A stretch of DNA of 64,000 nt from NCBI GenBank assembly GCA_009103225.1, contig RHPI01002619.1, positions 1 through 64,000 of the forward strand. The letters run 5' to 3'. This document shows, one piece after another, positions 5,548 to 40,546 of the stretch (its first letter is position 1; each line of letters starts with the position of its first letter). Position numbers and translations under genes: made by a program. Origin of the DNA: Chlorokybus atmophyticus. Its lineage: Eukaryota; Plantae; Mesostigma and Chlorokybus algae. The notes beneath the pieces were generated by a model. The model searched no databases. It worked only from the letters and a program-made list of their open reading frames with translations, and was not told the DNA's origin.

Positions 5548-7424
5548 TGTGCGAACATAGCCCAATAATGCGCTTAGATTAATACTATGCAGTGGAGCAG
5601 GTAAACCAGCAGGCGTGACAATGAAAAAAGCGGTCCTCACGCCATACTTTAAGGTGCAATCTTGCAATACAGTAGAATGCCGCATTCCACAATGTTGTGT
5701 AAGTCACCTGCGTTGGAAATCTTTCTACCTAAGGGCTTTGCTGCTGTTGGTGTCTGTATGCCTGCGACTTTATTAATGATTCAATCATTTCCTTGGGTAA
5801 TGCTTCAAGTATGTAACGCAAGCCCAAATAGTATACGTACCAGTGCTTGCGCTCGTCGCAAATGTGGCGGCGAGCGCTAGCATTTGATCGTTAAGTTTGC
5901 CCAGTGCCAAGTATTGCGACCTCAATTAATTCAAGTGCCGTACTTGGCACGACATAGTAATATTGCTTTTTAGTAAACAATTAATTCAATACATGCGATT
6001 ACTGTAATTGTTAAGTCAAAAATAACGCAATCCGAGGGTCATTTGTACAAAATCATTAATAAATCCAACTGAAAGACGTATGTTGTAAACATTGAAATGT
6101 ACAGGTTTTGCTTGTGACAATAATGCTTCAAAAAGTGAACAACGCAGCCGTATAGATTGGTCACATGCTATAAATCTCAAATTACGTGGAGATGTGTACC
6201 TGTTGGGTCAACTTTGAGTTGATATTTTGAAAGTATACAAATTAAGTCAGCTATACTATTGATGAAGTCATATTGAATAACAAGAACGCATCAAAAGATT
6301 TATCAGAGAATGACGACGTGAGCCAATAGTTTGGCTGCAAGCCAACTTGCGCATAAGGGATATGTTGATGCAAGGACCAAGTCAATAAAACTGGATTCAA
6401 CGGTCAACAATGCAATTCAACAATTGAACCATGGCATGCATCTCTAATCATTGAATACATCTACAATGGATGTCAGTTTAGCTAATCGAACGGCACAAGC
6501 AATCAAGGAATTTCTGCGTGTGCAACATTGGCGCCTTAACCATTGCCATGGCAGTAAAAGTCGCTTCCATAGGTGGAGCCACACGCCATGTATAATTCCC
6601 ATAACCACACATGTGACAACATGTCAACTCTATGATGCATCCACATGCCTATGCAAGCAATGTTTGATCTGAAACTTTTTGGACACTTATGCCAAACTAC
6701 AAATGCTAAATTCTTTACGTATATTGAGATGATGTGTCAACTACTCATCTGTGTAAACAACATCATTATTGCAGTGTTTGCCCCTGTTCATTAATGCAGT
6801 GATGATCAACCGGCTCTTCCCCTGCATTACTATGGTGTCATTGCTCTATACATAAACGTGTTTAACATGAAAACAACTCATATAAGAGTTGCGTAAAGCA
6901 AACTTAGTGCTGATTGCCGGTGCTTGTCTCGCGCAATTGCTGGTTAGTAATCGCGGCAATTTTCAACAACGGTGCCATCCACGCCCAAGTGGGTGGGCAT
7001 TTTAACACAATCGCCACTTTACTAGTTGGTCAACCTGGATTGCATGAAAACCGGCACAATCGGTTGCAAACAATACAGGATGTGTGCACATACGGAAGCA
7101 GTAGCAATCAATGCACAGTCATGATGTATGTACGTACCCCCGTAGGCAATGGACTGATACATACTGGTTGCATACAGCTGCAACTCAGTTGAATTTGGCC
7201 ACAAACGCACAATTGGCCAAGTAAACAACCTACCTGGCATTGCAATCACAATCCTGGACATCAGCGAAGATGCATCAACAGCAACGTCGTGCTGTTAACC
7301 TGCCTTGGCAGGTTAACAGTGCAGCAGCCAATAACCCACAATGTCTCCAGCTCATATACAATCAGCTACTCATACTCACTATACATTGTCAAACCAGCAA
7401 TGTCAACAGGGAGGGAAAAGCGCA

Positions 7425-29899: not shown

Positions 29900-31604
29900 C
29901 GTTAGAAGTATCCTGCCATGATGCAGCTGTGTTTTACAATACACCAAAACCGACGCAACAGAGAATTAGGGCAACTGGTTAGCTGAGATATAGGCTCTGG
30001 GTATAGCTTGCAGGTGTGGTTTGGGCTAACATTGTTGGATTGAGCGCTAGGTGTCTTTTTGACTAGCCTACTACTCTTCTCGACTATCCCACAGTTCTGC
30101 ACCCGGGGGAGGNATCACCATTTGCCAAGCTCCTCCAACAAGTTTGATGCTCGACTGTGTGTTGGGGGGGAGGGGGGGCTGTGCATGCTAGTGACTTCAT
30201 CTGACTGGACAACAGATCGGCTGTGAAGAATATTGTTCATGCTTTTATGGCAGGGGACAAGGCAATCATGCTTGACCAGAGCTTGGCGTCACTGATATAC
30301 ACAGCATGAGTACATCAGTGACATCAGGCTTGTTGAGGTACCACTTGAAAACATGGCGTTCACATATTGCACATGCACTAATGGCATCAATTACTTGGTC
30401 GTGGCTCGTCTGTATCAACACTCCTTCAAGAAACGGAAAAAGGTTGATCAAGTGAACTGTGTTATCCCTGTCACTGTCAGCCGACTGCTACAGTGGTCGA
30501 AATCCGCCATCGCAGTGCCTTGATTGAAAAGCAACCACCCAAAACTGGTACAAGACCGACTGATTGTACGTGAACTGACACTGCGTATTGTAGTAATACG
30601 CAGTGTCTGTTCAACTCTCTCAGCTCTACTGAGCGATGTACTACAGGTGCATGTCACGCAAGATGACGGGGCAGTGTCGTACACTTTACCTACTGTAAGC
30701 AGCACGCACAATTGTGTTCTGACAATTGTTTCTTACAGCTTTTGGCACAGCTGCTTACAATCTGTCGCTGTGCCAAGGTGAAGGCCCTCCCCCACTGCTG
30801 ACGCCCTTGCTGTCGCCACGGCCGCCGCCGCCGCCAGATCGAACAGGCCTCTCCGTCACCACAGGCTCTTGGAGGGAGGCCATGACGGCGGCGGCGCGAG
30901 TGCGGCCGCCTGCGGCGGCGGTCCTGAGGAGGCTGCTAGCGCTCCACATGGCTCCTCCACCCCAACCCCTAGTTGCTGTTCCAATACCAACAAGACCCCT
31001 GCAAGGTGCACCAGGCCACGCTGCTGCTGTTAATGATGGTGCTGCTGCAAGTTGCGTGCTCAGCCTGCTCGCAAGGAGCAAGTGCTTGGTGCGGCCCCAG
31101 GCTTGCACCGTAGCTCTCACCAGAAGCCTCTGCGGCGTACCAACCCCAGCATGCCCGACCAACCTCACCACCACCAGCATACTACAGGCATAATTACCAC
31201 CGCCGCCGCCGCCGCTCTAAACCGCGTACGCGATATAACGGTGATCAATTTTCTTTGCACGCTTAACGCCGCGCCCGCTCAGCTGTCCGCACACGTTACA
31301 AACACACAAATTCTCTCCCGCCTTGCACCCCAAACGGTCAGCTTTGCACTTGTTTAGGCACCTAAATTGCGCTGCACATGAGTCGCACAAACTTTCTGAG
31401 GCTTTAACAGCGCCCGGTATATGCCACGTGGCTGGTTGCTGCGCAAGCTGCCAGTTTGGCCTGATCTCGTTGATCACCTCGTCCATGAGTACTGCCGGTA
31501 CGGTACAGCACTTGGTTGTTGTCGTTTCGTACTTTGCTGTACAAAGTGTACCTCTGCGTGCTTACGTGGTCCGCGTACGGTCCTGTCTCGCTTGGTTTCT
31601 CGGA

Positions 31605-31770
31605 ATTATACTACTTTGCACACGATGAACGATTTACATTCCTTTTGTTTCAAACAATTATCCTACCTACAGTCCAACTTTGGCAAGAACACCTAAGCCC
31701 TACGATCATACGCGTTCATCGTTATAAGTATGATTTACACGATGAACAACTGCGAATGCATTGAACATTC
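31605..31770. repeat. Split direct repeat B, terminal copy
   Basis: attatactactttgcacacg...gcattgaacattc, identical to 32207-32372. Confidence 0.95.
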
Positions 31771-32008
31771 GGGATGTACCGACGGTGGCTAGCAATGAAG
31801 CGAAATGCCGTCGATGTAACAACGTAATTGCACGGTCAGCAGCACGCCATTGACGCAACCCGGATCCTATTCAACCGAGACGAATGCATTTAGAATCACG
31901 ATCCATTTATCTCGTTCCTGAGCATGAGCATGAACTTGAAAGCGCAATCGAGACGAGGCGCATAGTTCTTGTGAAGCGCGGCGGCGCATCAGGGTGGGGC
32001 GGGAAGGG

Positions 32009-32372
32009 CGAATTTTCGCCGTCGCCAGCAGCGTCGCCAACAACGCCGCCGCTGAGGTGACGGCCTCAACTGCTCTGTTGCTTGACACGTGTGTGTCAAG
32101 CAACAGAGGCAAACCCTAACTTAAACTATACGTATTAATCACTTACTTATTAATTTGTTAAACGAAAAACTCGCCGGCCAATAGTTGAAGCCGACGAGTA
32201 ATGCCCATTATACTACTTTGCACACGATGAACGATTTACATTCCTTTTGTTTCAAACAATTATCCTACCTACAGTCCAACTTTGGCAAGAACACCTAAGC
32301 CCTACGATCATACGCGTTCATCGTTATAAGTATGATTTACACGATGAACAACTGCGAATGCATTGAACATTC
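32009..32372. repeat. Internal fused A+B repeat junction (A 32009-32207, B 32207-32372)
   Basis: The A copy runs directly into the B copy, sharing one A at 32207. Confidence 0.95.
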
Positions 32373-32438
32373 TACCTCCCCCTCCCAAGCATATATCAGT
32401 AGGGACGAGTTGTAGGTGTAGAGCCTGGTGTATTTGTA

Positions 32439-33788
32439 TTGCCAAAGTTGCAAATCAAGATAGTTTTGTTTGGTTGCCTGACACAGTGTTTGATCCTTGC
32501 GCAGAGTGCTGCGCGCAGTCGTCTGACAATGTGTGTGATCGTTGTGCAGATGGACTTCGCACAGCGCTTGCAACATACCGCTGATGCACAACGCACCGCA
32601 CGCGCGACTGTGCGTCCACAGCAAGTAATGGGGTGTAATCTGCGAGAGCGAGCAGCAGCAGCGCTTTTGGAAGTAGAGCGCATCAGTCGTGAAGCTGTAT
32701 CTGATGGCACTCGCGACCAACGCGATCGCGTCTGGCAAGAGTTTGCCAACTACCTGCAACATCCTGAGCTCAACATTGCCGTCGCCAACGTCACCCCAGC
32801 TATTGTCACAAGCTACCTTGCTGGGCACTGGACCGACACACACATCGGCAAAGCTCGCAGGCTCGACCGCCATGGTCATCGCATGATCGCCAGCACCACA
32901 CTAGACAATGTGATCTCACATCTCACATGCTCCTTCAGACTTCTAGGGCGCATCAGCCCATGGGACAGCGACACATCCACAGGGAACCCGCTTCTGTCCA
33001 TAGACGTGCGCGAGTTCCGTCAAGGATATGCAAAGATTGCTGCTCGGCAAGGAGTTCAACCTATTCCTGCTGTGCCATTGGCAATTGATGACATGCGAAC
33101 GCTTATCGCATACTTCCAACACCAGCTGTTTACCATACCTCAGCAACTGACAGTCACACATGATAAGGCTGTGCTCTGGCGCGACTATGCACTTTGCCTA
33201 TACCTATGGTGCACATGGCAACGGGGTGGTGAAGGTGCGCGTTTACAGATGCACGAGATACAAGCGGCAGGTTCTGGGTTGACGGCCACTGTAACACATC
33301 TCAAGAATTACAGCACTGGAGGTGCACCCACTATACCAGTGCGCAGCAGTGGTTTGCCTGTGGAGTTCTCTGAAGTGCTCTATGCCTATTTGACCTACTG
33401 TCGCGGGAGCTGCTTTGCCATCACCGCTGGTCCTCTATTTCGGCCTGTTGCGAAGAATAGGTTGAAGTGGGAAGAACATAGCATGTCTGGTAACTGTGCA
33501 TACCATGCAATTGCGCGCTGCTGCAAGGCATGTGGCATATATAGGCCGCACCTGGGGTTGCACTCTTTCAGACGTGGTGCCGCTCAGAGCGCCTTCCGCT
33601 GTGGCGTTACTCTGGAAGAAATACAAGCTCAAGGCACATGGAGAAGTTCTGTTATCATGCACCGTTACCTACACGAAAGGTGCGCTTACCCAATGCACAA
33701 AAGCACAAATGTATGGGTAGCGTCCAGGGTTGATGCTGTTTTCGGGTACTCGAGCACCACGTTCAAACCATTCGGGCCGTGGGCCTAA
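32439..33788 (+). CDS. Tyrosine recombinase of the DIRS element, antisense to gag/pol; likely start ATG 32550
   Basis: Catalytic set R (CTWQRGGEG), K (HLKNY), HxxR (LHSFRRGAA), W (QGTWRS) and Y (MHRY). Uninterrupted ORF. Confidence 0.93.
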   Translation: MPKLQIKIVLFGCLTQCLILAQSAARSRLTMCVIVVQMDFAQRLQHTADAQRTARATVRPQQVMGCNLRERAAAALLEVERISREAVSDGTRDQRDRVWQEFANYLQHPELNIAVANVTPAIVTSYLAGHWTDTHIGKARRLDRHGHRMIASTTLDNVISHLTCSFRLLGRISPWDSDTSTGNPLLSIDVREFRQGYAKIAARQGVQPIPAVPLAIDDMRTLIAYFQHQLFTIPQQLTVTHDKAVLWRDYALCLYLWCTWQRGGEGARLQMHEIQAAGSGLTATVTHLKNYSTGGAPTIPVRSSGLPVEFSEVLYAYLTYCRGSCFAITAGPLFRPVAKNRLKWEEHSMSGNCAYHAIARCCKACGIYRPHLGLHSFRRGAAQSAFRCGVTLEEIQAQGTWRSSVIMHRYLHERCAYPMHKSTNVWVASRVDAVFGYSSTTFKPFGPWA

Positions 33789-35927
33789 TCTCTCATAATA
33801 AGTGAATTGCCAGTTGCGGAACACTGGCCACCACACAGCAGAGTGCCATTCAGGCACCAACACCACAGCTGGCAGCTGGTAATATTGCAATAATGCTATG
33901 GCTTCATGCAGGAGGGCCAATGGCGGGTGACACCAAACAAAGCCGCCCCCTAAGCGTTGAAGAACATCGCGCCAGTTTGTAGTAAGAGCATTGCCCAAAC
34001 TTCCAGGCATGTGTATGTAACTCAAATAAGCAGGTGCTTTGCTGTTCCAATCAGCTGCAAAACAATCCAAAATTGGGTGTCCAACACGTTGTTGTACAAG
34101 CGCGGTTGCGTCTGCGGTCAGGGCCCAATCTCCTCTGTCAGTAAATTTAGATAATGCATCCGCATCACGCAGCTCATCACGTGAGCGCCACACACATGTC
34201 AGCGCAATATCACGCTCCCAGCACAAAGACCACAATTGATGTAAAGCTTGTAGGATATGAGGCTCAGAAGCAGACAGCTTGTTGAGCATTTGAATCGCTG
34301 GTTGACAATCGCCAATAATGCGCACTGTACAGTGCTGAAGATCGTGCGTGCGTGCTACTTCAGTAAATGCTTGGACATAAGCGAGTGCCTCTTTGATGGC
34401 CGAAGGCAGCGACATATGCTCAGGCTGAAAGTTGCCTGCCATGCGAGGCCAAGGACCTGTCGCCCCCCAACCAATGGTACCCGAAGCATCCACGTGCAGC
34501 TCAAGCAGTACGGGGGGCTTCCACCAAGCGTTGCCATTGTAAGTCTGCAAGCCAGCCGCAGTCCACTCATAGAAGTGTCTGAAGGCGTTCGTATCACTCA
34601 CAGTATCGTCCCATGCATCAGCAACCAACGCTAAACGCATCAGCTGGCGAGCATAAATGCTTGCAGGTGCAAAAGCTAGTCTTAGCGCAATCAATTTGCC
34701 AGCAATGCGTGCCAGATGACGCTTGGTCAATATAGGAGCTTCTGCTAACTCTTTCATCAGCTGCAATAGCTTGGTCAGCTTGCTTGCAGGAATAGCAAAA
34801 GAGCCTGCCACAGTGTCCACCAGCAGACCCAACATCTGTACCACCTGCTCCGGCCACAACTGGCTTTTCTTCACAGAAATATATATTCCAAGCACCTTAA
34901 ACAGACGCAATACGCGGCGAATGCGCCAGCACAAATGCCAACGATTGGAATGGCTGAAGTGCATGTCATCAATATAGGAAAGGCATGGAAAGCTCATAGC
35001 CCGTAAAGGCGTGAAGATAGTGGACATCAAGTTCGTAAACAGCCAGCATGCTTGACTCAGGCCAAATGGCAGCACATTCCACCTGTATGTGACTCCAGCA
35101 AATCGCAAAGCCAAGTAAGGCTTGCTGTCCTCATGAATGGGCACATGATGATAACCCGACTTCAAGTCCGCTGTTACTTGCCAAAAGTGGCGCTTTGTGT
35201 ACAGCAATATATCGCGCAACCTCTCATAGTTGAAGGGAATGTGGCGCAAAAAGAGGTTGATATACCTCAGGTCCATAATGAGTCGCAAACGTTTTTCCTG
35301 CTCAACCACTCCTATGCCAGTGACCACTGCCGCGCTGTGCGCATTAACTACAGAGATTGCTCCTGTTGTCACCAAATTTGCCAACTCACTGACAACGTAT
35401 TCGCGATGTATAGAAGCGGACTTGCGATTTCGAAACACAACTGGTGTTGGGGAATTGCGTGACAGCATAATTGTAATATCCTCAACAGCAAAGCCTTCGG
35501 CCTGTAACAATGCATGTACTTCTTCCCACTTGCGTCTATCCGATGCTTGAGTGCCGACCCATTGTAAGCGATACCCGTAACGCAACCAGTCAAGCACAAA
35601 TGTCTTCTTGCTTTGCATCGTCAAGTGAAACCATGTGGTCCATGCTGCGAGCTTCTGCTGCAAAGAGGCTGCCACAAAATTTTCCGCATTAAGAGTTTCG
35701 GTGTGTAGCTGCTCTGCCCATTGGGTTGCTGAGCTAGGATGCTCTTCAAAGCCTGTTGACACTTGTGACAACTCCGCATATACTGAACGAATGTCCTCTT
35801 GTTGCTGTGCAATAGGTAAGCTCGCAACAGTGTGTGGCACTTGTGTAATAACATCAGTGTGCTCCTCTGGTGGGGACAAAGGGTCCACTGCCAAAGCTGG
35901 CATTGCAGGATCCCACTCTGCTTGCAT
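33669..35927 (-). CDS. DIRS pol: reverse transcriptase, RNase H and C-terminal adenine-methyltransferase-like domain; frame open upstream to 36086
   Basis: RT KRLRLIMDLRYIN, TADLKSGYHHV, LPFGLS, YIDDM; RNase H HVDAS, IKEALA, GDCQ, ADALSK; MT-like LDCFAADWNSK...WCHPPL...LVPEW...WWP. Uninterrupted ORF. Confidence 0.95.
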   Translation of the reverse strand: MQAEWDPAMPALAVDPLSPPEEHTDVITQVPHTVASLPIAQQQEDIRSVYAELSQVSTGFEEHPSSATQWAEQLHTETLNAENFVAASLQQKLAAWTTWFHLTMQSKKTFVLDWLRYGYRLQWVGTQASDRRKWEEVHALLQAEGFAVEDITIMLSRNSPTPVVFRNRKSASIHREYVVSELANLVTTGAISVVNAHSAAVVTGIGVVEQEKRLRLIMDLRYINLFLRHIPFNYERLRDILLYTKRHFWQVTADLKSGYHHVPIHEDSKPYLALRFAGVTYRWNVLPFGLSQACWLFTNLMSTIFTPLRAMSFPCLSYIDDMHFSHSNRWHLCWRIRRVLRLFKVLGIYISVKKSQLWPEQVVQMLGLLVDTVAGSFAIPASKLTKLLQLMKELAEAPILTKRHLARIAGKLIALRLAFAPASIYARQLMRLALVADAWDDTVSDTNAFRHFYEWTAAGLQTYNGNAWWKPPVLLELHVDASGTIGWGATGPWPRMAGNFQPEHMSLPSAIKEALAYVQAFTEVARTHDLQHCTVRIIGDCQPAIQMLNKLSASEPHILQALHQLWSLCWERDIALTCVWRSRDELRDADALSKFTDRGDWALTADATALVQQRVGHPILDCFAADWNSKAPAYLSYIHMPGSLGNALTTNWRDVLQRLGGGFVWCHPPLALLHEAIALLQYYQLPAVVLVPEWHSAVWWPVFRNWQFTYYERLGPRPEWFERGARVPENSINPGRYPYICAFVHWVSAPFV

Positions 35928-36280
35928 GCAATCATCCTCAAGAATGGCACTAATAGCGACGAGTTCTTCAGATGTGCTATGTCTGCGCACATGCCAATCA
36001 ATTAAGCTATACCAGAAGTGACTATTGGCCTTTCGTATGCGAAATAACCCTGTCAAGTAACATACAGCTGTGTGTATCATACACACATGCCATTGTCAGC
36101 CATGAACAGCTGCACTTCAAGTACACTATAATACATCATCCAAACATGCATACATGCGCAGTTGCGCGCATACATGCATACATGCGCGCTTGCGCCAGCT
36201 ATGATACACACCAGCACCTGTCGACATCTTCTGCTATTGCACTGTAGCTACTCGGCAGCTGTACTGGCAGCATGACTTAC

Positions 36281-37895
36281 TGCTGCAATGCTAGGCGTGG
36301 CTGCTCTTGCACGGGGACATAGTATGCCAGCGCTTCCTGGTGAGCGGGCGCAGCCTGTTGATTGTTGTAGCCGCCTCCGCGACCGTAACCACCACGACCA
36401 CCGCGGCCGTAGCCACCACGACCGCGTCCACGCTGGAACTGGGTGCTCCCCTCTTCTGTAACGGAGCGCCTGTAGGCGCACAATTGCATCAATGGTCTAA
36501 CGTGAAGCAAACCTTAAGTAGAACTCACAGGTATGCACCGTGCCCATTGCAGCTGGTTGTTCAATGCAATAGTAACAGCACATGTGCTGTGCACCAACAC
36601 ATGAACAAGTGCTGTGCACTGCTTGACATATATATGGGAGTGGACACAGGCGCACATGGCACCATTGACATGGTGTTGCAACTGATGTTGTATGCACACA
36701 TTGTGCGCATTATCAAATACAACGGGTGCGTGAAGCACCATGCTATCTGACAGCAACTGTGGTGCACGCTGCATGTATTATGCACACATTGTGCCATTGT
36801 TGAACAGGCGCGCATTGCACCATTACAACAGATAGCAGCTGCTGAGCATGCTGCATGCACACATTGTGCATGTTCATAAGCAGGTGCGCATTGCACCATG
36901 ACACAAACAGCAGTTGCTGAGCATACTGCACGCACACATTGTGCGACTGTTAAGCAAAGTGCATGTGTGCATGTCAGCGCATTGCATGTTTGGTGTTACA
37001 ACTCTCACAAGCAACAGACTTACTGAGGGACAGAAGTCTTTGCCTTTTGCATGGCTGCTTTGCCCTGGAAGCTGTTGGCGAGCTTGGTGAGGCGCCGAAT
37101 CACCTTGGCTTCCTTGTGTTTGCGGTTGATGCGGGCGTCGTTGATGATACCTCGAGCCCCGGTCGCAAAAGCTGCTGCAAAGTCCACGCTACCGTGCACG
37201 TGCGTGAGCAGCATCTGATACAGATATGACACCAACTGCGCAACTGGCGGACCTGTGAAGAGGGCACGGCCAATCGCCTCGAAGCAAGCCTGCACACCAG
37301 TCGAGACCTTGCGCGTGCGGTACTCCTCCCACAAGGCATATGTCTCTGATTGCTTGGACAGGCGCTTGATGAAGCTGATGTGCTTGATGTATTTCGTATG
37401 CCTATCTCCAGAGTCGGAGCTGTCCGTATCAGAGCTAGATGATGACGAGGAGGTGGATGACGAGGACGACGTGCGTCTCTTCTTGTGCACCTTCTTCTTC
37501 CTCTTGAACCTCTTCTTTTTGTTGTCCTCCTCCTCCTCCGAGGTGGATGACAATTCCACTCTACTACGCTGACGTCGCGGAACCGTGGGCAGCTTTAGCT
37601 TGGCAGCTTGCTCTGGCTCTGCAGCGTTTTCCAGCGTCACCTCTGGCTCTGGCTCTGGCTCTGGCTCTGCGTCGGCCGCATGTGACTTTGGCGGCACAGG
37701 CTGAGCCGTACGCCTAGCTACCGGCGCAGCAGGCTGCGTGGCCTTCCGCGCTGCTCGCCGCTGCTTGGCCGCGCTGGCCTGCCCCTCATCACCGGCCGGT
37801 GATGCGGCCTGCTTGCCTGGCTGCGCAGCTCCAGCAGCCGGCTTCTTTCGGCCGCGCTGCCCGCCAGCAGCCACAGCCCGCCCCTTCGGCGGCAT
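36281..37895 (-). CDS. DIRS gag-like ORF, spliced (exons 37895-37024 and 36469-36281; 3' end beyond this unresolved)
   Basis: ATG 37895 (MPPKGR...) lies 30 nt inside repeat A. Basic and Ser-rich protein. A phase-2 GTAAGT donor at 37023 joins in frame to the CAG acceptor at 36470, adding an RGG-rich exon. A second GTAAGT donor is at 36280. Confidence 0.72.
36690..36950. repeat. Degenerate 75-bp tandem repeat inside the gag intron
   Basis: gcacacattgtgc recurs at 36782, 36857 and 36932 (period 75) with conserved gcattgcaccat and gctgagcat; a looser copy is near 36694. Confidence 0.8.
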
Positions 37896-37924
37896 CTCTC
37901 TCTCTCCTCTCCCCAAACTTTCGC

Positions 37925-38123
37925 CGAATTTTCGCCGTCGCCAGCAGCGTCGCCAACAACGCCGCCGCTGAGGTGACGGCCTCAACTGCTCTGTTGCTTG
38001 ACACGTGTGTGTCAAGCAACAGAGGCAAACCCTAACTTAAACTATACGTATTAATCACTTACTTATTAATTTGTTAAACGAAAAACTCGCCGGCCAATAG
38101 TTGAAGCCGACGAGTAATGCCCA
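37925..38123. repeat. Split direct repeat A, terminal copy (5' end of the element)
   Basis: Identical to 32009-32207. Confidence 0.95.
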
Positions 38124-38270
38124 GTCCTGGACAAGTGATGCGTGGTTCGGTTCGACCTGTTTGGGACCTTCCTCTGAACCTGTTCCAAACCTGTCGTGAC
38201 GGTACCACCGACGGGTGGACTAGGCTTTGCCATGGCAAACTCAGCGCACTACATTGCGGTCATTGTCGCC

Positions 38271-40546
38271 ATGGCTGGGCTTCTCGCTCGCATAGGGGCG
38301 GGCGTCCTGCGCCGCAGCGCTGCTGTGGCGCCTCAGACTCGGTACGCTTCTGGAACAGCACAAGCGCTGGTTTACCACAAGTATGGCGATCCTGAGAAAG
38401 TGCTCCGGTATGTGGACAGGCTGATGCTGCGAACTCACAGCTGGTCTCTTATCGCTGTGCTTGAACGCATGCGTAACCACTTAGGATCCTGTCGTATGCA
38501 ACGCGCTGTGCATGCGATTGACAGGCATGCATTGGCAAGTGTCGCATTGCCGTCGCATGCAACGCACACGTCATGCTGTAGTGCATTGCACGCATCGAGC
38601 TGCTCCTGGGGTTCCACTGCCTTTGTTCCTATCATGCATTATAAGTGTGCTTACAACAAGATTCCTTTGCCTTGTGGGTGACAGCAAGGCCTTGTTGGTG
38701 AGTGCTTACACATGTATTGGGCGATGTACGAGATGGCATTACCAGTGCAAACGTTGATGGTGTTACTACTCTTCACATGCGGTCGTGGTCATGGTCATTT
38801 GTTTCTATCCTTGACACATGCACTGACTCACTCTTGCTCACATGAACGACCTGCCCAGGCTGGACGAGCAACCACTGCAAGCTCCGCAATCTGGCGAAGT
38901 GTCTCTGCAGATGCTTGCCGCATCGATGAACCCTGCTGACTTCAACACGATTCAAGGTATAATTTGTTGCTTCAGCTGCAAGTCACCTCAATTATAAGCG
39001 CAATGAAACGGGTTGAGCTTGGTTGGCTGAAGCAAAAGTTGCTTCATTCCTGCATGTAGGAACATATGGCATCAAGTCTTCACTGCCAGCTATTGGTGGC
39101 ATGGAAGGAGTCGCTAAGGTTTCGGAGGTTGGGTCTGGTGTCAAGGGCTTGAAGGTTAACGACTGGGTCATTCCCGCAGCACCTGGCTTTGGCACGTCTT
39201 GGTATCTTGTGTCTGCACTATTTGCATGCCATTGCTGACTCCACTAACTTCGTCAGGAACATGGCGAACAGCTGGGGTTGCATTTGAATCCGCTCTCCTC
39301 AAAATATCCTCCAATGTCCCTGTTGAAGTTGCTGCCACTGTTGCAGTCAACCCCTGCACAGCACTGCGCATGCTGACTGACTTTGTGTTGCTCAAAGCAG
39401 GTTAGTTGTACTGTTTTTGCCGTTAATGCCATTTCAGCCGAGTACATAAATCTTGCTGTTGACACGCAGCAACATCATGCAGGCGACGTTGTCTTGCAAA
39501 ATGGCGCCAACAGTGCTGTTGGTCAAGCAGTCATTCAGATTGCAAAAGACAAGGGTGTGAAGACCATCAACATTGTACGCGAAAGGTGAACATAATCACT
39601 TGTTGTGGCTGGGCAGTTGCTTGTTGTGGTCCACTGAAATCGAGTGCGCGGTCATTCGCAGACCCAATCTGGCTGATACTGTGGAGTGGTTGAAAGCACT
39701 TGGCGGAGATGTCGTTGTCACGGACAAGTACTCTACATCGCATGAGATGCAAAGGTTGCTGGTAAGTTAGCCTACCGCAATCTCCTGCTATGGGATTTGT
39801 CTGTGCCCTCGCACCAACACGTTGCAGAAGCCCTACAGTCACTCAGGGTTATCTTACATGTCTTACATAAAACAGGGTGTTGTGTGTGTTGCTTTCTCAT
39901 GCCTTCTGTTCTGTTCAGAGCGACCTTCCCAAGCCAAAACTGGCACTTAATTGCGTTGGAGGCATTGGTGCTCGCAACATATCACGATTGCTAGAGTATG
40001 TAGCTAATTGATGCATGCGCATGCAGGCGGGGTTGTTTCTCTGCCAGTGCAAGCGTATTGTGTGGTCTCTAATCTAAGCCTGGCTTTTTCTGCAGCCAAG
40101 GTGGTGTACTTGTAACATATGGTGGCATGTCCCGAGAACCTGTGATGATTCCAACATCGTACTTCATCTTCAAGGTACGCAGCTTCACACATTTTGGTAG
40201 CCTTCAAGAGTTGTGGTTGTCTGCAGTGGTGTTATGTTTTAAAAATACCCAACATTCAAAACCAGGACATTTCCGCGCGTGGCTTCTGGGTCTCCAATTG
40301 GTTAACGCAACACTCCACATCAGAACGACTGGACATGATTAACACAGTGCTGAAGATGGCCGAAGCTGGAAAGTTCACGTTGCAGTGAGTCCTGTGTACT
40401 TGCAAAATTGCGCCCAGCTGACGCATGGTTGCTAACAAGCTTGTGGTTGCAGAACTGAAACCGTCCCATTCAAGGATTACAAAAAAGCCCTGCAAAAAGC
40501 TCGCGCACCCTTCAGCAGTAAAAAGCAGATTATCTCGTTCCAATAG
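38271..40546 (+). CDS. MECR: Mitochondrial trans-2-enoyl-ACP/CoA reductase (MDR family), multi-exon
   Basis: [93 protein letters not shown]. Arg-rich N-terminal presequence. An alternative in-frame ATG is at 38232. Confidence 0.93.

Follow-up and report, generated by a model that had tools for sequence, protein, structure and literature searches.

A 64,000-nucleotide stretch of DNA from the streptophyte alga Chlorokybus atmophyticus (contig RHPI01002619.1; hereafter, the window) contains a single element of ~6.5 kb on the minus strand, at positions 31605-38123. Very probably, it is a tyrosine-recombinase retrotransposon of the PAT-like kind (DIRS order), complete in its structure and belonging to a clade of the green lineage in which the recombinase gene is antisense. 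Read along the minus strand, its parts are the repeat A1, a first open reading frame (ORF1), a gap, pol, the tyrosine recombinase (YR) gene in antisense, the abutting repeats B1-A2, a spacer (S), and the repeat B2:

37925-38123, minus strand: A1, the 5' terminal repeat, 199 bp, identical to A2

37020-37895, minus strand: ORF1, in the gag position, 291 amino acids, an open frame from the ATG at 37895 to the stop at 37020

36087-37019, minus strand: non-coding gap of ~0.9 kb, with stops in all sense frames

33669-36086, minus strand: pol open reading frame (ORF), 805 amino acids if counted from a GTG at 36086, with the first ATG at 36080

32529-33788, plus strand: YR, 419 amino acids, from the ATG at 32529 to the stop at 33788, antisense to pol

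32207-32372, minus strand: B1, internal repeat, 166 bp, identical to B2

32009-32207, minus strand: A2, internal repeat, adjoining B1 with a 1-nt overlap (T)

31771-32008, minus strand: spacer S, 238 bp, unique, GC content 0.54

31605-31770, minus strand: B2, the 3' terminal repeat, 166 bp, identical to B1

37989-38024 (within A1) and 32073-32108 (within A2), no strand: palindrome of 36 nt with perfect 16-nt arms and a 4-nt centre, from a motif search

The repeats are of the split direct type, A1...B1-A2...B2. According to a repeat search, blastn, and string comparison, the two A copies (199 bp each) are 100% identical, and so are the two B copies (166 bp each). B1 and A2 meet at 32207, where one T is common to both. 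A sequence-only reading of the window had described both pairs as free of differences and had placed a unique spacer of 238 bp between the internal A and the terminal B. Both statements held up: each pair is a pair of identical strings, and blastn found no similarity between the spacer and the rest of the element or the 64-kb window. Because of this lack of similarity, we rejected the idea that the spacer derives from the internal region by deletion. Nor did blastn find further copies or solo repeats of the element in the window.

The repeat search did not find any terminal inverted repeats, and the only inverted repeat within the element is the palindrome inside A. The inverted terminal repeats and internal complementary region (ICR) that define DIRS1-like elements are absent. 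We observed no target-site duplication or flank repeat at the ends of the element: the flanks have only a single ambiguous T in common, and they are no more alike than shuffles are. No Rfam families were found across 31000-38700, the phage DNA collection had no match to the element, and a scan of viral contigs did not turn up any relatives of it.

The perfect identity of both repeat pairs might be taken as a sign that the assembly collapsed or duplicated the repeat copies. Also, relatives in short-read metagenomes (described below) close on themselves with overlaps that are the size of a k-mer, which shows how assemblers handle such repeats. Nevertheless, we consider an assembly artefact to be very unlikely. 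The arrangement is exactly as published for the family; the spacer is unique, as are the flanks on both sides, which include a host gene; and a collapse would not make an ordered B-A junction beside intact ORFs.

The pol protein has a conserved N-terminal region, a reverse transcriptase (RT) domain (amino acids 286-421, with the motif YIDD), an RNase H (RH) domain, and a Dam-like methyltransferase (MT) domain (amino acids 651-755). The RT domain matches Pfam's RVT_1 at E = 1.7e-17, and the match to Dam (E = 4e-4) is under Pfam's cutoff. When aligned with nine relatives (protein alignment A1), pol is alignable from about amino acid 60 to 800 (~740 amino acids), that is, to the last residues. 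Columns that are fully or almost fully conserved include D307 and Y-I-D373-D374 of the RT and D533, E566, D593, and D643 of the RNase H. The element has a conserved MT region, so it does not belong to the Ngaro or VIPER type, which lacks the MT. The alignment also shows that the relatives' pol proteins have a start methionine just upstream of a conserved "DP" stretch, so a separate pol ORF is normal for this group.

Exchange of the Dam domain between DIRS elements and long terminal repeat (LTR) elements has been reported (2026 preprint, 10.64898/2026.05.21.726589), which lends something to another explanation: an LTR element of the Ty3/gypsy type whose LTRs are permuted and split and which gained a recombinase. 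Against this, Pfam did not identify a DDE integrase, a protease, a chromodomain, or any other extra domain in any ORF of the element, and gypsy-type proteins appeared in the word search only at E values of 1e-5 to 1e-7. Because the element has no integrase and its pol aligns end to end with RT-RH-MT proteins of the DIRS type, we regard a gypsy-type origin as scarcely credible.

The recombinase has the full R-K-H-R-Y set. It matches Phage_integrase from Pfam (E = 8e-6), and an alignment of 14 DIRS-type recombinases (protein alignment A2) shows no variation at R232, K259, H345, R348, or Y380. A profile built from the alignment matches Cre over its full length, including both domains (E = 2.6e-25). 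The codon for the catalytic tyrosine (33666-33668) lies directly against the stop codon of pol. The convergent genes overlap by 120 bp (33669-33788), and because of where the tyrosine codon lies, this overlap is limited to the unconserved 39-residue tail of the YR. Overall, all of the catalytic residues of the RT, the RNase H, and the YR are present in the element.

These results agree with much of what had been proposed from the sequence. The assignment to the DIRS order with PAT-type split repeats is supported by the YR, by the RT-RH-MT pol, and by the A...BA...B order, and the recombinase is indeed inverted, as it is on the plus strand and pol is on the minus strand. The frames that had been called gag, pol, and YR are all open, as claimed, but the identity of "gag" is based on its position only (see below).

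We also looked for the ALOG domain (PF04852), and there was no match at E values of up to 10 in the YR or in 13 related YRs. Since there was also no ALOG chain among the matches to PDB profiles, we rejected a link to ALOG. One atlas neighbour does have an ALOG domain, which we treat as a lead only. Iyer and Aravind (2012) described complete ALOG-type DIRS elements as unknown in streptophytes (PMC3537659). The element in Chlorokybus is not the ALOG-type element that has been looked for as the origin of the ALOG transcription factors of plants.

Word searches found seven relatives of pol (31% identity at best) and three relatives of the YR (26-28% identity). An exhaustive search with pol found 20,688 proteins at E ≤ 0.001, including 835 at E < 1e-30. 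Over the full length, the best matches were 30-34% identical, and no relative exceeded ~34% over its length. Judging by these sequence comparisons, pol is a highly divergent member of a large family of DIRS/PAT pol proteins. The named relatives among the matches include GAQ84615.1 from Klebsormidium nitens and GLC46806.1 from Pleodorina starrii; the Pleodorina protein is only 26% identical to the pol from the window.

The closest match to pol by identity (44%) is a 304-residue RT fragment from Chlorokybus atmophyticus itself (P0017, gene model Chrsp66S07209). This gene model indicates that Chlorokybus probably has at least one further, divergent family of the DIRS type.

We built trees of pol with FastTree (on 150 and 118 rows) and with IQ-TREE (LG+C20 with SH-aLRT, on 52 rows). 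In every tree, the proteins split into two sides with 100% support (local or SH-aLRT). The pol from the window is on the same side as the proteins from Klebsormidium nitens and Pleodorina starrii, and it groups with the Klebsormidium set with 96-99% support from FastTree and 91% SH-aLRT support under the mixture model. The far side of the tree was labelled by YR orientation alone.

To examine the orientation of the recombinase across the family, we scanned metagenomes and obtained 80 loci, whose YRs were located with a hidden Markov model built from the YR in the window and its relatives. In loci L014, L017, and the near-identical L033 and L034, the YR is downstream of pol and on the opposite strand. 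L014 and L017 are in the tree, on the same side as the element from the window; the pol ORFs of L033 and L034 were too short to include. In contrast, every locus with a YR on the other side of the tree (more than 40 loci) has it in the same orientation as pol. Because the inverted loci stand against more than 40 co-oriented loci on the other side, the antisense YR looks like a feature of a clade rather than an oddity of Volvox; on the window's side, this reading is based on three distinct loci besides the window. As had been proposed, the element represents this architecture in a different algal lineage: its host lies outside the Chlorophyceae.

Some of the metagenomic loci close on themselves. 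L017 by itself, and L014 together with L032, form units of ~6.6 kb in the metagenome assemblies. The overlaps are between 1-123 and 6604-6726 of L017 (123 bp) and between 5037-5163 of L014 and 19-145 of L032 (127 bp). Because these overlaps are the size of a k-mer, we did not count them as A repeats. The closure is consistent with an internal B-A junction, closure by k-mers, tandem copies, or circular DNA. Just ahead of the point of self-closure, L017 has an inverted pair (6560-6591) with 13-nt arms and a 6-nt spacer, which is the geometry of a Cre/lox-type core site.

ORF1 is harder to place. Its first 120 amino acids are basic and of low complexity, and its C-terminal half is all-helical. 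It lacks a zinc knuckle: there is just one cysteine and no match to a zinc-knuckle Pfam. We did not find any Pfam family, word-search homologue, or atlas match for ORF1, and BLASTP did not find any similarity to the ORFs of L017. A single-sequence AlphaFold2 (AF2) model had a pLDDT of 54, which is too poor to use. Since no family or homologue was found, "gag" is a positional label only. The start codon of ORF1 is 30 nt past the end of A1, and A1 is presumed to be the promoter and 5' leader.

The gap between ORF1 and pol contains a degenerate 75-bp tandem repeat at 36780-36944, and no Pfam domains were found in its short ORFs. Degenerate tandem repeats of 75-100 bp are also present between the first ORF and pol in L017 (792-1084) and in L033/L034 (4269-4616 of L033). 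They are absent from L032, so we rejected these repeats as a general feature of the clade. ORF1 (37020-37895) and pol (open frame 33669-36095) are in a common reading frame, 927 bp apart, and a spliced ORF1-pol fusion is conceivable.

How does this element compare to known ones? The PAT superfamily (Pat1-like elements, TOC, and Kangaroo) is defined by split direct repeats, and its YR is sometimes inverted (PMC3266345). Kangaroo, from Volvox carteri, has an inverted YR, lacks a zinc finger in Gag, and has its internal repeats between the MT and the YR (PMC4157794). The element from Chlorokybus resembles Kangaroo in its split direct repeats, its RT-RH-MT pol, its inverted YR, its zinc-finger-free Gag or ORF1, and its green-algal host (PMC4157794, PMC3266345), and a volvocine protein (from Pleodorina starrii) is in the same pol clade with 100% support. 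However, the YR of Kangaroo lies between A2 and B2, while in Chlorokybus, B1-A2 (32009-32372) lies beyond the start of the YR (32529). As a result, Kangaroo has a whole gene between A2 and B2 (PMC4157794), instead of just 238 bp. The two hosts are on opposite sides of the split between chlorophytes and streptophytes, and Kangaroo was compared by its published description.

The order of the parts is identical to that in a "novel" PAT form from Daphnia pulex (Szitenberg et al. 2014, Fig. 1G; PMC4157794). That form also has an inverted YR, and its internal repeats are just upstream of the 3' terminal repeat. It differs in having an animal host, and it too was compared by its published description. 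In that study, the Daphnia form was positioned beside Pat1-like elements, and its inversion was treated as homoplasy (PMC4157794).

TOC3 and the PAT-like DIRS elements of Chlamydomonas and its relatives are from green algae and have split repeats, an MT, and no zinc finger in Gag (PMC4157794, PMC8226300), but the YR of TOC3 is co-oriented with pol. VIPER from Trypanosoma cruzi has the arrangement A1...B1-A2-B2, in which both pairs are 100% identical and A2 is set off from B2 by a short unique stretch, and its A2-spacer-B2 module also occurs as a free element, SIRE (PMC6681497). VIPER differs in that it lacks an MT, its host is a kinetoplastid, its YR is co-oriented, and its spacer is only ~30 bp. 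DIRS-1 from Dictyostelium has a YR and an RT-RH-MT pol, templates its ends on an internal junction, and does not duplicate its target (PMC7192593), but it has inverted terminal repeats and an ICR instead of direct split repeats. The internal junction (ICR) is needed for retrotransposition of DIRS-1 (PMC7192593).

The sequence-only reading had also presented the element as a candidate for an undescribed system. This claim does not survive the comparison. Split repeats together with an inverted YR were already known from Kangaroo and from the Daphnia PAT form (PMC3266345, PMC4157794), a spacer between A2 and B2 was known from VIPER/SIRE (PMC6681497), and DIRS and Ngaro elements have been recorded in streptophyte algae. 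Specifically, they were reported in K. nitens and C. braunii, and reported to be missing from both Penium and the land plants (bioRxiv 10.1101/835561). In the literature that we searched, we did not find any paper on DIRS-type elements in Chlorokybus.

If the element follows the published DIRS/PAT (split-repeat) model, from which we took the steps of its cycle, then a sense RNA would run from A1 to B2 and would encode ORF1 and the polyprotein with RT, RNase H, and MT. A separate antisense transcript, beginning in the S/A2/B1 region, would supply the Cre-like recombinase. Reverse transcription would give a cDNA whose missing ends would be restored on the internal B1-A2 junction, and the cDNA would then be closed into a circle. 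Finally, the recombinase would cross the B|A junction of the circle with a chromosomal site and would leave no target-site duplication. We infer these transcripts, the circle, the recombination site, and any current activity from the model, along with the role of the B1-A2 abutment as the template for the B-A "circle junction." The structure fits every requirement of the model: the internal B-A junction is perfect, the Cre-like enzyme is intact, and the ends lack a duplication.

The repeats also contain candidate signals. As RNA, A folds far better than shuffles do (z = -5.6), and its palindrome has two matches in the window, which are the two A copies, while none were expected. In each copy of B, GTTCATCGT occurs three times, twice directly and once inverted, and the inverted occurrence is ~17 nt from the B|A junction. 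The motif is a 9-mer that is confined to the B copies (6 matches in the window, versus 0.24 expected). TGTAA occurs twice in B, at positions 32 and 133, and the second occurrence is 29 nt ahead of the end of B. The palindrome and the fold of A, GTTCATCGT, and TGTAA are candidates for recombinase-binding, promoter, or polyadenylation signals.

The main alternative to a single complete element is that it is a composite. A circle with one junction (A-internal-B) might have recombined into a non-autonomous A-S-B element of 603 bp that was already resident, via homology of A or via the recombinase, giving a tandem of A-I-B-A-S-B. The unique spacer bears no relation to the internal region, and canonical descriptions have B1-A2-B2 with a short spacer or none. 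In T. cruzi, the A2-30 bp-B2 module stands alone as SIRE (PMC6681497), and the two B-A junctions amount to 365 bp of perfect direct identity, which would be a substrate for such an exchange. On the other hand, integrated copies in every split-repeat family normally have the form A1...B1-A2...B2, which requires no special event. Also, blastn did not find a solo A-S-B unit in the window, and since Kangaroo has a whole gene between A2 and B2 (PMC4157794), long spacers are normal in the group. Overall, we think that a composite origin is improbable.

Several points weigh against our preferred reading of a complete PAT-like element from a green-lineage clade. The pol from the window is on a long branch, and under the mixture model the SH-aLRT support for its grouping with Klebsormidium is only 91%. 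In the trees, the proteins from Pleodorina and Klebsormidium are the only proxies for named PAT references (Pat1, Kangaroo, and TOC3). ORF1 has no detectable relative, so its identification as gag is positional, and a stretch of 0.9 kb with many stops parts it from pol. The MT may be inactive, because its motif IV is HPP instead of the FPP of its relatives, which makes catalysis doubtful. At the junction, the crossover overlap is 1 nt (T), as opposed to the trinucleotide suggested by published comparisons of DIRS elements.

A broader scenario would join these features. The PAT elements with antisense YRs might form one old lineage of green plants that predates the split between chlorophytes and streptophytes, with the element from Chlorokybus as its deepest streptophyte member. 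The two perfect B-A junctions would let the YR split the replication circle in two, one circle of full length and one A-S-B minicircle of 603 bp, and the minicircle would seed a SIRE-like non-autonomous family, and the palindrome in A would serve both of the divergent transcription units. We consider this combination to be speculative and, taken as a whole, rather unlikely.

The description of the element as young and potentially active is plausible. This copy is probably recent, because 365 bp of repeats are without a difference and three frames are open. But identity within the pairs is a weaker clock than LTR identity would be, because, under the model, the internal junction is the template only for those portions of the ends that are missing from the RNA.

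The element lies next to the exons of a gene that resembles medium-chain dehydrogenases or enoyl reductases (38196-39600 of the window, plus strand; the exon at 39023-39238 matches ADH_N from Pfam). The 5' end of the element is ~110 bp upstream of the likely ATG of this gene (~38232), and the two are head to head. Given this short distance, the insertion is within the promoter or the 5' untranslated region of the gene.

In summary, this is a new and highly divergent member of the PAT/DIRS type, in an early-branching relative of the land plants, and it does not imply a new mechanism. We expect it to be of moderate interest, to transposon specialists. In early-branching streptophyte algae, such elements have so far been only percentages in tables of repeats; here, there is a complete and apparently functional reference copy of a YR retrotransposon from one of the earliest-branching of these algae. 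With its perfect junctions, candidate binding motifs, and intact Cre-like enzyme, the element is a clean substrate for testing the proposed circle-and-junction model of split-repeat elements.

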